Of a stretch of 63,863 nucleotides of DNA, positions 30,301 to 39,300 are shown piece by piece. The stretch is from contig NC_068999.1 in assembly GCF_001194135.2 (NCBI RefSeq), forward strand, positions 22,145,021 to 22,208,883. The letters are read 5' to 3'. The DNA comes from Octopus bimaculoides (lineage: Eukaryota). Within the stretch, counting starts at the first letter, position 1. The number at the start of each line of letters is the position of its first letter. The notes beneath the pieces were generated by a model. The model was not told the origin of the DNA and searched no databases. It worked only from the letters and a program-made list of their open reading frames with translations. The translations under genes and the position numbers were made by a program.

Positions 30301-33300
30301 AAGGCACTGCATCATTTTATAGGAGGGGATGAATAATAACAAAGAAAGAGATTTACATCAAGCTTTCACATACATACAGGATGTGACTGACTCACCAGGC
30401 TCATTATGGAAATTAACATATTCTCTGATCTCATATTCAGTCGAATAACACATTTTTCACTGTTCATGAGAGAGAAAGTATGTACATCTGTGTGTTGTGT
30501 GTGGAGAGAGAAAGTGTGTGTGTGTGTGTGTGTGTGTGTGTGCGTGTGTATGTGTGTGTGTGAGAGAGAGAGAGAGACAGAGACAGAGAGAAGTAAAATT
30601 ATATATATATATTTTTACGTGTTTAAGTTTTAAAATGAAATATGCAGTTACAAAGAGTGCAAACATGATAAAATAAAAATGTGAAAGCTGGTGGAAGTTG
30701 AACCCATATCTCCTTGGTGGGACTTAGGTACAATGTTCACTGTATTACATCAATAGAATCAACCTCCCACATTAGCATCATTAAAACTCTGTGTGTGTGT
30801 GTGTGTAATAAAAAGCTAAAAAATACTACATATTGAGTTTTTTTTCACACACACACAAATGAAGGGGAGAGAGTCTGTGAGTGTATGTGTTATAGAGAAT
30901 ATAAAAAAAATAATGAGTTGCAATTTTGCACTTTGGGATATATAGAACCATTTCCAACACCCTTTTATTAGCAAGAACTTGATACTTCAATAGTGTTGCA
31001 TGAAGAGAGTTAATGGAAACAGCAAACCCAGTATAAACTATTTAGAAAACATACCTTACATTTCTCAACAGTAATGTTTCTCTTTGAGAAGTAATTGAAA
31101 GATGGACCAAATATAGAAACCAGTACATAAAGGATCAAAGTAGAATCAGTGTTAAGAACTAGATTCTTGAAACTCTCTGAATTTTTTGAAGAAAGGAGGG
31201 AAGAAGAAATAAAGCAGCCTTATTTATTGATTTTCTTATTACTACTGTGTTCTTTATCCGATATCAGGGTTTGCCTTTTAATAAGTTAGTAGCTTCAGCA
31301 AAATAGAGATAGGGCTTTTGTGACTTGGCTCTTGATTCCCACCTGTAAGCTATTTCTCTTCGCTTGTGCAATTAATGCTCTAAGGAAAGGAGGCATGTGT
31401 ATCACAATATTTCTCTCCTCTCCATAAATCAATGCACTGAGATGTGAACGATATGTCTGATTGCAAAAGGTTAAGCAATTGATTCTGTGTAACATTCTGG
31501 TGCAGGGAATAAATATTTAACCTTAACATTAAAAAAAAAACAAAAAAACCTTTAGTCATAGCAAACTGGAGAGCAGAGGATGCAAAAGACTGCAACTGAA
31601 AGAGATTTTCACTGTAAAATTATTCAATAACTACTATTTTCATTGTGAGATCATCAGCACTAACGTTACTGATTTATTAGCATAGGATGAGTTCTGTCAT
31701 GTTGACATATCCTAAGGATACTACATGCAGATTATATTGATGCTCTAAATCCCCAATGAGTTGACAGTGTGTATATTATAAATACAAGGCTTATACAATT
31801 AGTATTGACTAATTTATTTTAATTTCGTTTCTGTACCTTACATAGGTGTTGTGATCAATATGCAATTGCTTATGGCTTCCAGTTATTTATTTCAGTCATT
31901 CGTCTGTGGCCATACTGGGGCTCTGCCTTGAAGGGTTTATTTGAACAAATTGACCCCAGTACTTATTATTTTTGAAGCCTGTTACCTATTCTATTCATAT
32001 CTTTTGCTTAACCACTAAGTTATAGGGACATAAACAAGCAAGCACCTGTTGTCAAGCGGTGGAGTGAGGGGAAAAACACAAACACACACATATATAAACA
32101 CATACACAACAGTTTCCATCTACCAAACCCACCCAGAAGGCTCTGGTTGGCCTAGGGCTATAGAAGACACTTGGCTAGGGCTACAGAACACACTTGCAAG
32201 TTATCATGCAATGGTGCTGAACCTGGAACCATGTGGCTGGGAAGCAAAACTTCTTAGCACATAACCATGCCACTGCCTGTGATCTATTCTTTAAACAATG
32301 TGAAACAACTAAACATTATTACAAAAGGGAAGCTTACATTTGAAAATGTTACATGGAGAAATTGAGAAAATTGACTCCTTTTATTTGCAAAAGTTTTAGT
32401 AGCAGAAAAACAAATGAAAAACACTCTTTTTACGTCATAAGTTCTGATGTTAAATAAGGCCCCAGAGGAAGTTAATACTTTATTGTTAGGCAATTGGCAT
32501 AAACAAATCCAAAAATCTAATTTGAGGATTAATATATAGTTAATACCCGTTTGACTACAAAAGAATGCTGTTTTTTAACAAGTCACCACTCCATATAATT
32601 GACAAGTGGTTGAACCTATCTAACCCATCCTATAATTACCAGGAAGATAATAACAGTTGCTATATAAGTACAATTAAAGAGGAGGTAATAAGCACAAACA
32701 TTTTATCAATTTAGAAATGTGAATATAATAATATTAGTACATGAGTAAGCAAACATTTTAAAACAATATTCTAGCAGTGTTTCATACTAAGAGAGATAAA
32801 CAAAAGTTAAAAGTTAGTAAACCAGTTCCAAGCTTTTCAATATTGATGGAGGAAAACAAAGTTAATGAAAACATGAATAACAAAAACTTATGTTACAACA
32901 TCTTTTCAACAAGTGAAAAACTTTCAAAAAAAGCCAGTGAAAAAGGTGAAGCAAAACAATAACAAGTCATCTTTTTTTTTTTTTTTTGTTCAAACTGCAT
33001 TTAACAATAATAATAATAATAACTTGTTGAAGTTTAGATTAGTTCTCAACAAATACAAAATAGCACACTTACCATCATAAACTGCAATGTTAACTAACAA
33101 TTAAATATGCAAAATCAGGACAAAAGATAAAAATAAACTAAAAATTAAGATTAAAAAAAAAAAAAGAAAACCATTATTTAATAAATCCCCAAATTTGACC
33201 ATTGTGAGATGTTTGAATCATCACTGNNNNNNNNNNNNNNNNNNNNNNNNNNNNNNNNNNNNNNNNNNNNNNNNNNNNNNNNNNNNNNNNNNNNNNNNNN

Positions 33301-36300: not shown

Positions 36301-39300
36301 AAAGCTGGACAAAAGAACCAAAACAAGGAAAAACTTGGAAATAGAATTAAAAAGAGAGGAAAAAATACAGCAGAATAAAATAAAGTGTCAAAAATATGCA
36401 ATAGCAATAGTAGTAATGATAATGATGATGATGATGATGGTAGTGGTAATGACATTAAAGAGAGGGAATTTCTGTTAAAGATAGCACTAATTGTAACATT
36501 GAAGATGATTATAATGATAAAGAGTAATTGTAATTATGGTTATGACAGCATCAATATATGCTCATTTTCAGCAAACTAACAAGGAACTAAAGAGCAATGT
36601 TAACAATAGCAAGCAATAACCATATTGTCAACATTGTTATTTGTTTACCTTAACTACTAATAGTCTGTAATTGTAGTCAGTAAAATGGAGAGGACCCGTT
36701 ACACTATACCAGTTTTTGTGCCAAACTAGATTTCAGTGAGTTTCAAGTCTAACAAGAACTTAAGATCAACTCTCAGAATATGTGAAGAGAAACTCGTTTG
36801 GCAGCAATCTTATCACAAAGGCAAAAATTATGAGGAGTGTATTAGTTTTAATTAATCTAATAATCAAAGAAGCAATGTAAATGGTACTAATACAGCTGCT
36901 GATAATGATAATTATGATGATGATAATGACAAGGAGAGCAGTAGAGAAAGATTGAGATGTGTTTGGCAAGAGAAGATAAGCAAAAAAACGTGCTGAATGT
37001 TTGTCTGCTGGATAAGAAAGACAGAGATTGAGAGTTAGTTGTTTATCACAACACAAACACACCTCATTATACTAGAGTTTCAAAGCTCTACTAGTGATTG
37101 CTGACAAGCACAATCATTTGAACTACTGTTAGTGTGATAAGTATGTATATGAGGTTAGGCATTTCTTTTTTTTCTTCTTTGTATTAGTATGGATGTTTGC
37201 TTTGTTGGTCTAATCTGTATAGTCATGATTATGGGTGTTTGCATGTTTTCCTTGCTTTATCTGTTTGTAGTTGCATGTACATATGAGTGTAATTGCACCA
37301 TTTAAGTTGTATATTTGTTTTATTTATCTGTATGTAATTGAAAGTCAATGTAAGAACTGAAATTTAGGTAAGTTTTTAGCAAAAATTCCAGGATGATGAC
37401 ACATTAAAGTTCCTTCTTATTTTTAAGATTAATCTTGAAAAAAGGCAAAGCTATGTGTCAAATTGTGGTTCTTTTGTTTTTAGCCTGACAAACATACATA
37501 GAAATATATCTAAAATGAGAATGTATATAATGTATACTGGCATTCATTAGAAAGTTTCCCTTGGTTAATTGAACATCTAAATCTCAGCTCAAAGTCGGAA
37601 TTATACTATGCCGTTCTTTGCAAGATTTGAATAATAGGTTGATAAGCATCAGTACGGTATTATTTACAATAATAATTTTGATCAATAAATATAAGGGCCT
37701 GACCAGCCACTAACAGATTGAGCCAGTTGCTATCCAGATGTCAGATGTTTGAGGACCCTGAACTACTGACTTCCTCCACCAAATAGGGATAATGCCAGTC
37801 TGTTGGAGTAATGAGCTCTGTGAGATGGAAGTGGCCGCTGCAGTGAGTGTTGCTGTCCATTCTCCAAGGCAATGCTGTCACGGGTACGGCTGAGCACACA
37901 ATTTGTTCTGGGGTATGTGGCCAATTTCCCCCTCCCATCTTCTGCTGCTATACCTCCCCCTTTTCTTCTTCTTCCCCACCCCCACCTTTCTTATCTCTCT
38001 TTTTTCCTGTTTATTTATATTTAAATGTTAATAATTTTATTCTGAAAAGCTATTTTAATAAAGTAAATAGTTTCAAAGAAATTTTCACATAAGCATAAGA
38101 TTTCAAATCTGTGAGATGTATTTATCAATTGAATCATACAGATTCTCAAAACACATTTATAAAATGTACACTTATATAAAATATATACATGTATAGGTAA
38201 TCAAGATGTTACTAAAACTGATATTCAACAGCATGTCATCATGTTTTCTATTAAGAGGTTTATCTCTACCAGCTTATATATGTAATTTGATGCATGTAGA
38301 TCATGTATGTTGACAATATAGTGCAACAAAATATAGGAATATTCTAATTTATAGATGTTGAGCAATGTATATTTGTTATATAATGTCATAGATAAAGATA
38401 ATGTAATTTGGATCAGGTAATAGAATACATAAAGATTTTGTTCATATAATGCAGTGCAATGTCTATAGATCATGTAAGTAATGTTATGTGTGCATGAAAG
38501 AATGAAATTCCAATGCAAAACTTAATGAGAAAACCTTATAGTGTAGTAGATTTTCATAGCATAAGCAGGAATCTTATTCTGGTCTTCTGCGCTAAGTACT
38601 TTTTTAGTGTTATCACACCTCTACAGTCACTTACCTGCCGACACTAGGTGAGTAACCATCATCATACGTCATTAATCAGGGTGATTAGAGAATTAAAAGA
38701 AAATAAAAAAAAAGAAAAGAGAATGTAGTTAAAAAGGCTTGTCCACACTTTACAAAACAAAAGAAATAAAATGGCATAAATAATATGTGTTTATATGTCT
38801 CATAGACTGTTTGTGAAAAGATGAGAAATAAGTCATCAGTTTAAGTTTATTGGATAGAACTTGAAAAATATTTTTTTAAAAAATGCCTTTTTTTTTAAAT
38901 GAATGATAAGGGATATTTAAATTTTTAATAAAATCTTTTAGTGAAAGAAATCTTGAACCTGAAATATTGGAAATATTTTGATGATGAAAAAATAAATATA
39001 TTAAAGATATAAGTTCAACAAAGAACAATATTTGAAATTAGTTTCAAATATTAATTAATATATCTAAGTTTACAGGGAGACCACAAAATATCTAATTTTG
39101 CAGCTATAAATCATTTTAGCTGAAAAGTAAAGCGAAAATGATACATTGATATCGAAATAAGATACATCGTTGAGAGAGAATTTGGGGAGATGCGGGAGAA
39201 GTGAAGCACAATGGCAGTGAACAAAAGAGTCTATGGATATGCAGATTCGTTACATGTTTACATGAATAAATAAAACTTTAGCATATTCAATTAATTGATG

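Follow-up and report, generated by a model that had tools for sequence, protein, structure and literature searches.

A 9-nucleotide microexon and a putative 6-nucleotide acceptor shift at one kinase-domain junction of Src42A in Octopus bimaculoides

How many very small exons are spliced into the kinase domain of octopus Src42A, and are they used in combination? The question is raised by a stretch of Octopus bimaculoides DNA of 63,863 nucleotides (nt), contig NC_068999.1, positions 22,145,021 to 22,208,883, which is called the window below; judged by its coding sequence, it is the 3' two-thirds of the Src42A gene, read on the minus strand. Two of its exons, whose products meet at the residues LQ/GKGR, are separated by a phase-1 intron of 23,523 nt. 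An earlier note had described in this 23.5-kilobase (kb) intron two units of the form YAG/9 nt/GTAAGT, both stop-free and frame-preserving, and a re-reading of the sequence confirmed all of these properties. It had also proposed that the units, A (V-S-A) and B (V-Y-D), are two 9-nt microexons; A was found in RefSeq isoforms and transcript contigs, whereas B was present in no isoform, had no match in the look-ups and stood at the level of chance. In our study, it was found highly probable that two choices are made at this junction, one of the cassette A and the other of an acceptor lying 6 nt upstream of the usual one, that they give four isoforms and that B is a chance match. The features of the junction are as follows, with positions counted in the window.

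44332 to 44490, minus strand: constitutive kinase-domain exon, (G)TMDPKDF...LLDYLQ + G, with the donor CAAG/gtaatt in phase 1.
38644 to 38737, minus strand: 3' splice-site region of A, a 94-nt AG-exclusion zone in which motif positions were scored.
38635 to 38643, minus strand: microexon A, TGTCGGCAG, encoding V-S-A, present in RefSeq isoforms and transcript contigs.
38626 to 38634, minus strand: 5' splice site of A, gtaagtgac, which together with the exon-final CAG agrees with CAG/GTAAGT at 9 of 9 positions.
20809 to 20814, minus strand: last 6 nt of the intron, TTGTAG, adjoining the downstream exon and read in phase 1 as (G)TT GTA G(GA), V-V-G.
20630 to 20808, minus strand: constitutive exon from alphaE to the DFG motif, ...HRDLAARN...DFGLARVIK, placed by tblastn and by the spliced coding sequence.

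The proteins were compared within a 96%-identical cluster (that of P0241, 18 members), which includes RefSeq and GenBank proteins of O. bimaculoides, O. sinensis, O. vulgaris and Argonauta hians together with transcript-derived proteins; the isoform alignment covers 15 listed of the 18 members. Unit A, in the context cctag/TGTCGGCAG/gtaagtgac, was represented by the VSA-bearing RefSeq isoforms XP_014775612.1 (O. bimaculoides, 2015), XP_029648314.1 and XP_029648313.1. Among the members listed, VSA alone was found at LQ/GKGR in O. sinensis X2, in the 2015 O. bimaculoides protein XP_014775612.1 and in two transcript proteins. No insert was found in O. vulgaris, O. sinensis X4, O. bimaculoides X2, Argonauta and three transcript proteins, and the skipped form was seen in P0361, P0365, P0368 and P0371-P0373. 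Six transcript contigs from cephalopod sequencing runs (L006-L011) also carry VSA at the junction, which reads TTACAAG/TTTCAGCAG/GAAAGGG in five runs and contains TGTCAGCAG in the remaining one. One of the five, SRR3011300, was made from whole-animal Sepia pharaonis (PMC5541922). Compared with TGTCGGCAG of the window, the contigs show one or two changes in the nine microexon bases, all of them synonymous, and 17-22% of their flanking-exon bases differ from those of the window. RefSeq isoforms and transcript contigs both show VSA, the latter with synonymous changes only, which identifies unit A, at the level of sequence, as a genuine alternative 9-nt cassette microexon. From the same comparison, we regard the VSA peptide as being under purifying selection and microexon A as common to octopods and at least one cuttlefish.

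The sequence around A was compared with the architecture of exons that depend on the eMIC domain, in which a UGC near the 3' splice site, a long AG-exclusion zone, a U/C-rich tract and a CUAAY branch point have been described (PMC8797185). The 94-nt AG-exclusion zone of A lies at the 98.6th percentile among the AG gaps of the intron. It contains a long U/C tract, with 82% pyrimidine from -90 to -41, and the motifs CTAAT at -45 and CTGAT at -36.

The isoforms X1 to X4 of O. sinensis were found to share one backbone, and an exact check gave VSAVV, VSA, VV and no insert at LQ/GKGR as their sole differences. All four forms are annotated in this species only. The VSAVV form is XP_029648313.1 (O. 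sinensis X1), and the VV form was found in XP_052830635.1 and XP_052830637.1 (O. bimaculoides X1 and X3), XP_014775613.1 (2015) and XP_029648315.1 (O. sinensis X3). The four combinatorial isoforms foreseen in the earlier note thus exist in number, but the second element is the 6-nt VV and not the 9-nt VYD. Its statement that annotation pipelines usually miss such exons did not hold for this gene, since RefSeq has listed VSA and VV isoforms of Src42A since 2015. The microexon, the 6-nt acceptor shift and the four isoforms are already contained in public RefSeq records and are no discovery of ours. A full-text literature search found no paper on microexons in Src42A, in cephalopods or in octopus that describes A or VV.

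In the mechanism that we propose, one phase-1 junction would offer two small splicing choices, independent of each other, and these would vary the loop that follows helix alphaD. In the first choice, the cassette A (38643-38635) is taken in or left out, the former adding Val-Ser-Ala. In the second, the downstream acceptor would be either the AG at 20809/20808 or a site 6 nt upstream, the latter adding Val-Val. The predicted products are LQ-GKGR, LQ-VSA-GKGR, LQ-VV-GKGR and LQ-VSAVV-GKGR, and B would stand outside the system as a chance AG/GT pair.

The source of VV was sought within the intron. The TTGTAG at 20814-20809 was found to be the sole intron site able to yield the annotated VV isoforms, and in this assembly it is preceded by cTG (20816-20815) instead of AG. 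If VV extends the downstream exon, it is expected to follow VSA, as it does in VSAVV. A separate 6-nt exon of the form AG/TNGTNG/GT was not found anywhere in the intron, and VV as a cassette exon was rejected. The sequence AG/TGGTTG/GC at 40478-40473 was also rejected as a VV exon, because it lies upstream of A, whereas VSAVV would require it downstream, and because its GC donor is poor. In 36 human genes, TG acceptors have been reported that serve solely as alternatives to an AG no more than 28 nt away and that have a pyrimidine at -3 (PMC2374985). The octopus sequence cTG/TTGTAG/GAAAGG agrees in these respects: its alternative AG is 6 nt away, and the c of cTG is the pyrimidine at -3. We favour, with moderate confidence, the origin of VV from a TG 3' splice site 6 nt upstream of the AG, that is, from a GT-TG intron. 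More tentatively, and with the chances falling a little short of even, this may be a genuine non-canonical TG site in tandem with AG that acts independently of the VSA microexon, so that the two elements would form a four-state switch of the alphaD-alphaE loop.

The last eight intron bases before the GKGR exon (tgttgtag/GAAAGGG; 20809-20816) were found to be the same in Octopus and in the scallop Pecten maximus (L012, about 29806-29813), and reading through them in frame gives VV in both. Since tgttgtag is identical in the scallop, the tandem site could predate the cephalopods; the shared bases could be either a chance similarity of acceptors or an old tandem site.

Unit B lies near an assembly gap, and the features of this part of the intron are given below.

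34337 to 34402, no strand assigned: copy 2 of an exact 66-nt direct repeat, with a T16 run identical to that of copy 1.
33227 to 33463, no strand assigned: assembly gap of 237 N, intronic, beginning 143 nt upstream (in the sense of the transcript) of the acceptor AG of B.
33073 to 33081, minus strand: candidate B, TTTATGATG (V-Y-D), unsupported.
32941 to 33006, no strand assigned: copy 1 of the exact 66-nt direct repeat, including a T16 run.

The context of B is ttgcag/TTTATGATG/gtaagtgtg, again 9 nt without a stop and frame-preserving. Its signals comprise the acceptor TTGCAG, the donor ATG/GTAAGT, CTGAT at -37 and TGC at -30 and -5. A TAG acceptor 12 nt upstream of that of B would give a possible 21-nt version. 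VYD and VSAVYD were absent from the annotated isoforms of three RefSeq annotation runs of two Octopus species and from the cluster members listed, and exact look-ups of both on the O. bimaculoides and O. sinensis backbones gave none, a weak negative that covers annotation and contig records. The intron contains four GTAAGT on the sense strand, two of which have a YAG exactly 9 nt upstream. In 1000 dinucleotide-preserving shuffles, YAG-N9-GTAAGT occurred with a mean of 0.164, at least once with P = 0.15 and at least twice with P = 0.011; the pair is therefore unusual, but a single further match next to a genuine exon would be unremarkable. On these sequence grounds, B is very probably a chance AG/GT pair.

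The flanks of A and B were compared for the homology expected of a duplicated exon pair, and low-complexity matches only were found. No dispersed repeat covering the 9-mer of A or of B was found, the sole repeat near B being the exact 66-nt one. The gap is intronic, 143 nt from the acceptor of B and 5.2 kb from A, and hence neither 9-mer is split from its splice sites. The two repeat copies flank both B and the gap, which makes the assembly around B doubtful; the repeat resembles either redundancy in the assembly or a local duplication of very recent origin. The earlier note had cautioned that chance AG..GT units occur in this intron, and the caution was justified by a further in-frame unit at the third GTAAGT. 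In-frame, stop-free YAGs were found 15, 21 and 30 nt upstream of this donor, which follows 42430 (42430-42459, minus strand; for example GAAGAAAGAATGAAA). The unit would turn the Gly of the junction into Arg, is present in no isoform and is probably also a chance match.

Several observations weigh against the arrangement of two choices with B left out. The annotations of O. bimaculoides disagree, the 2015 set giving VSA and VV and the XP_0528306xx set giving VV and no insert, and this inconsistency places the support for each form near the limit of the pipeline. TGC was not found within 40 nt upstream of A, where UGC is expected for eMIC-dependent exons, and A thus appears to match that architecture in part: in the AG-exclusion zone, the U/C tract and the CUAAY motif, with the UGC missing. 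For the acceptor, the TG reading depends on one assembly and on RefSeq protein models, and the base at +1 after TG is a T, whereas human TG sites, which make up about 0.01% of candidate motifs, prefer a purine there (PMC2374985). VV and VSAVV were not found in exact look-ups on two Sepia-like backbones. As for B, a rare and cell-type-specific use may be compatible with its absence from the annotation.

These points were weighed together with three other explanations. If A and B were both real, as tandem or mutually exclusive exons, B would have to be rare or neuron-subtype-specific, unannotated, and additional to VV. The canonical signals of B, its TGC at -30 and -5, which resemble those of eMIC targets, and the occurrence of two YAG-N9-GTAAGT units in only 1.1% of shuffles speak for this. 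However, neither VYD nor VSAVYD appears in any isoform listed or in the exact look-ups on two Octopus backbones, one extra match has a P of about 0.15 once A is real, an AG 12 nt upstream competes with the acceptor of B, and B lies 143 nt from a gap within a segment flanked by the exact 66-nt repeat. We consider the use of both units improbable. The opposite extreme, that A and B are both chance matches and that no splicing takes place within the intron, could draw on the other in-frame AG..GT units; it is practically negligible, because RefSeq isoforms and six independent contigs place VSA exactly at the junction, and the nucleotides of these contigs are those of A apart from synonymous changes.

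The origin of VV is the part that is more open to doubt. VV might come not from TG but from an assembly error or polymorphism at 20816-20815, where a cAG would make an ordinary AG-AG tandem, from a hidden 6-nt microexon within sequence missing from the assembly, for instance in the gap, or from an alignment artefact; of these, an assembly error with a true cAG is the main alternative to the TG reading. The rarity of TG acceptors in human, the gapped draft nature of the assembly of the window, the lack of a VV form on the Sepia-like backbones and the inconsistent RefSeq releases favour such an origin. Against it, the 6 nt adjoining the exon read exactly V-V-G, and a chance match to a hidden exon is unlikely; VV models arose independently in the 2015 and the later O. 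bimaculoides annotations and in O. sinensis, with VV following VSA in VSAVV; and the 2015 models were presumably made from the same gapped draft as the window, in which case VV could not stem from an exon concealed by the gap. We judge an origin of VV other than TG unlikely, though far less so than the use of both A and B. The cassette A together with the upstream acceptor remains our preferred reading.

The insert was aligned to c-Src and fell into the loop between helices alphaD and alphaE, as the earlier note had placed it. Relative to c-Src, the VSAVV form is four residues longer and the skipped form is one residue shorter. In an AlphaFold2 (AF2) model, residues 336-341 (LLDYLQ) and 352-371 are helical and VSAG is non-helical; the predicted local distance difference test score (pLDDT) of 56 makes the model a weak support for this position. 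Alignment and model together put the insert in the kinase domain after helix alphaD and before helix alphaE. The two, three or five small or hydrophobic residues would lengthen or stiffen the alphaD-alphaE loop, and may in this way adjust a surface of the C-lobe that serves docking or regulation.

The structure of the gene in the window was obtained by tblastn, for which a fly Src42A sequence served solely as the probe. Six exons were placed on the minus strand (47162-46999, 46853-46685, 44490-44332, 20808-20630, 16373-16217 and 12387-12176), all with canonical splice sites. The exon 20808-20630 starts as ag/GAAAGGGTCGT, reading (G)KGRTLKL, and the exon 44490-44332 with its phase-1 boundary recurs across many animals. 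The concatenated coding sequence of the window is identical at 345 of 345 residues to O. bimaculoides Src42A isoform X2 (XP_052830636.1) and differs by one residue from the O. sinensis, O. vulgaris and Argonauta proteins. Protein queries of 112 and 54 residues had returned short open reading frame fragments of other animals (best identity 87% and 94%) and no cephalopod; because the matches were about as long as the queries, the search was repeated with the concatenated 345 residues, and the Octopus cluster was then found. The exon reading frames of the window (120 and 111 residues) had nothing on record in the contig index, metagenomes scanned for the spliced junction, a gap of 0-30 nt being allowed, gave 0 matches, and no matches to Rfam families or tRNAs were found in the window. 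The SH3 exon and the first SH2 exon were not found at 47205-63863, the upstream part of the window, which fits the roughly 200 kb that the gene spans in the chromosome-level assembly; the recorded Src42A ranges are 220 kb in O. sinensis, 203 kb in O. bimaculoides v2 and 119 kb in Argonauta hians. In the N-terminal unique region, which lies outside the window, one transcript protein was found without 'GN' (NV--VTPC in comparison with NVGNVTPC; P0241 and P0371-P0374), a 6-nt difference in the unique domain that may reflect either another minor splicing event or a divergence between species.

In other lineages, LQGKGR without an insert was found in representative Src42A proteins of other molluscs, nemerteans and most arthropods. 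The counterpart intron of Pecten maximus is 974 nt long, and a VSA-like exon with credible splice sites was not found in it. Among the sequences examined, the VSA insert is confined to cephalopods. Further small inserts were observed at the junction, namely GKGT/GKGN in P0283 (a transcript contig) and P0303 (the psyllid Cacopsylla), GTQ in an ant, Q in Dreissena and T in P0355 (a transcript contig). The LQ/GKGR junction seems, from these sequences, prone to small changes in length.

The three additional residues AIA of fly Src42A had been cited in the earlier note as a sign of an old 9-nt cassette position. AIA does exist, in two fly contigs that read ttttag/CAATTGCAG/GCAAATGTCGT (L004, 1285-1300; L005, about 1320-1335), one of them from a run of Drosophila hydei material. 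It runs on continuously into the downstream exon, however, and an internal TTGCAG/G would supply a second AG acceptor 9 nt away. The fly AIA is read here as a 9-nt acceptor shift and not as a cassette exon, and no ancient 9-nt cassette position is implied by it. Flies could make LQ-GK... and LQ-AIA-GK... by the choice of acceptor.

The locus provides a clean case of a lineage-specific microexon within the catalytic domain of a kinase, whose VSA peptide has been kept since the split of octopus and cuttlefish. It adds to the independent gains of small neural-type exons by the same gene across lineages, which include n-Src in vertebrates and a 27-nt exon in the fly. It also illustrates the limit of calls made from patterns alone, as the intron holds two equally good-looking AG/GT pairs and one of them is used. 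The TG acceptor, if confirmed, would be of some interest for research on the mechanism of splicing.

Among known systems, the kinase insert domains of the receptor tyrosine kinases PDGFR, KIT and VEGFR also lie between alphaD and alphaE; they are constitutive, comprise tens of residues and carry phosphotyrosine docking sites. The octopus inserts occupy the same topological place, an analogy of position only, whereas they are two to five residues (V, S, A) long, lack Tyr and are subject to alternative splicing. The n-Src exons, of 18 and 33 nt, lie in the SH3 domain, in the n-Src loop. The octopus microexon resembles those of vertebrate n-Src as an in-frame Src-family microexon that lengthens a surface loop and gives combinatorial isoforms, and differs in that the insert is 9 nt long, lies in the kinase domain after alphaD and belongs to a Src42A/FRK-type paralogue.

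Drosophila Src42A contains a 27-nt neural microexon that depends on the eMIC domain of Srrm234 and lies at chr2R:6009798-6009824, directly after an early 439-nt exon (PMC8797185). It is similar to A as a microexon in the orthologous gene; from its coordinates we infer that it lies away from the LQ/GKGR junction and hence is separate from A and not its orthologue. By position, it may be near the SH3 domain, like the vertebrate n-Src exons. The fly AIA shares with the octopus VV the same phase-1 junction and the origin of its additional residues in bases adjoining the downstream exon. In the fly (ttttag/CAATTGCAG/GCAAA), both candidate acceptors are AG and stand 9 nt apart, whereas the octopus sites are separated by 6 nt, with TG as the upstream one. 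The human TG-AG tandem sites (PMC2374985) are similar to the octopus site in the distance of cTG from AG, here 6 nt, and in the pyrimidine at -3; the octopus site differs from them in having T instead of a purine at +1, and its use of TG is deduced from RefSeq protein isoforms.

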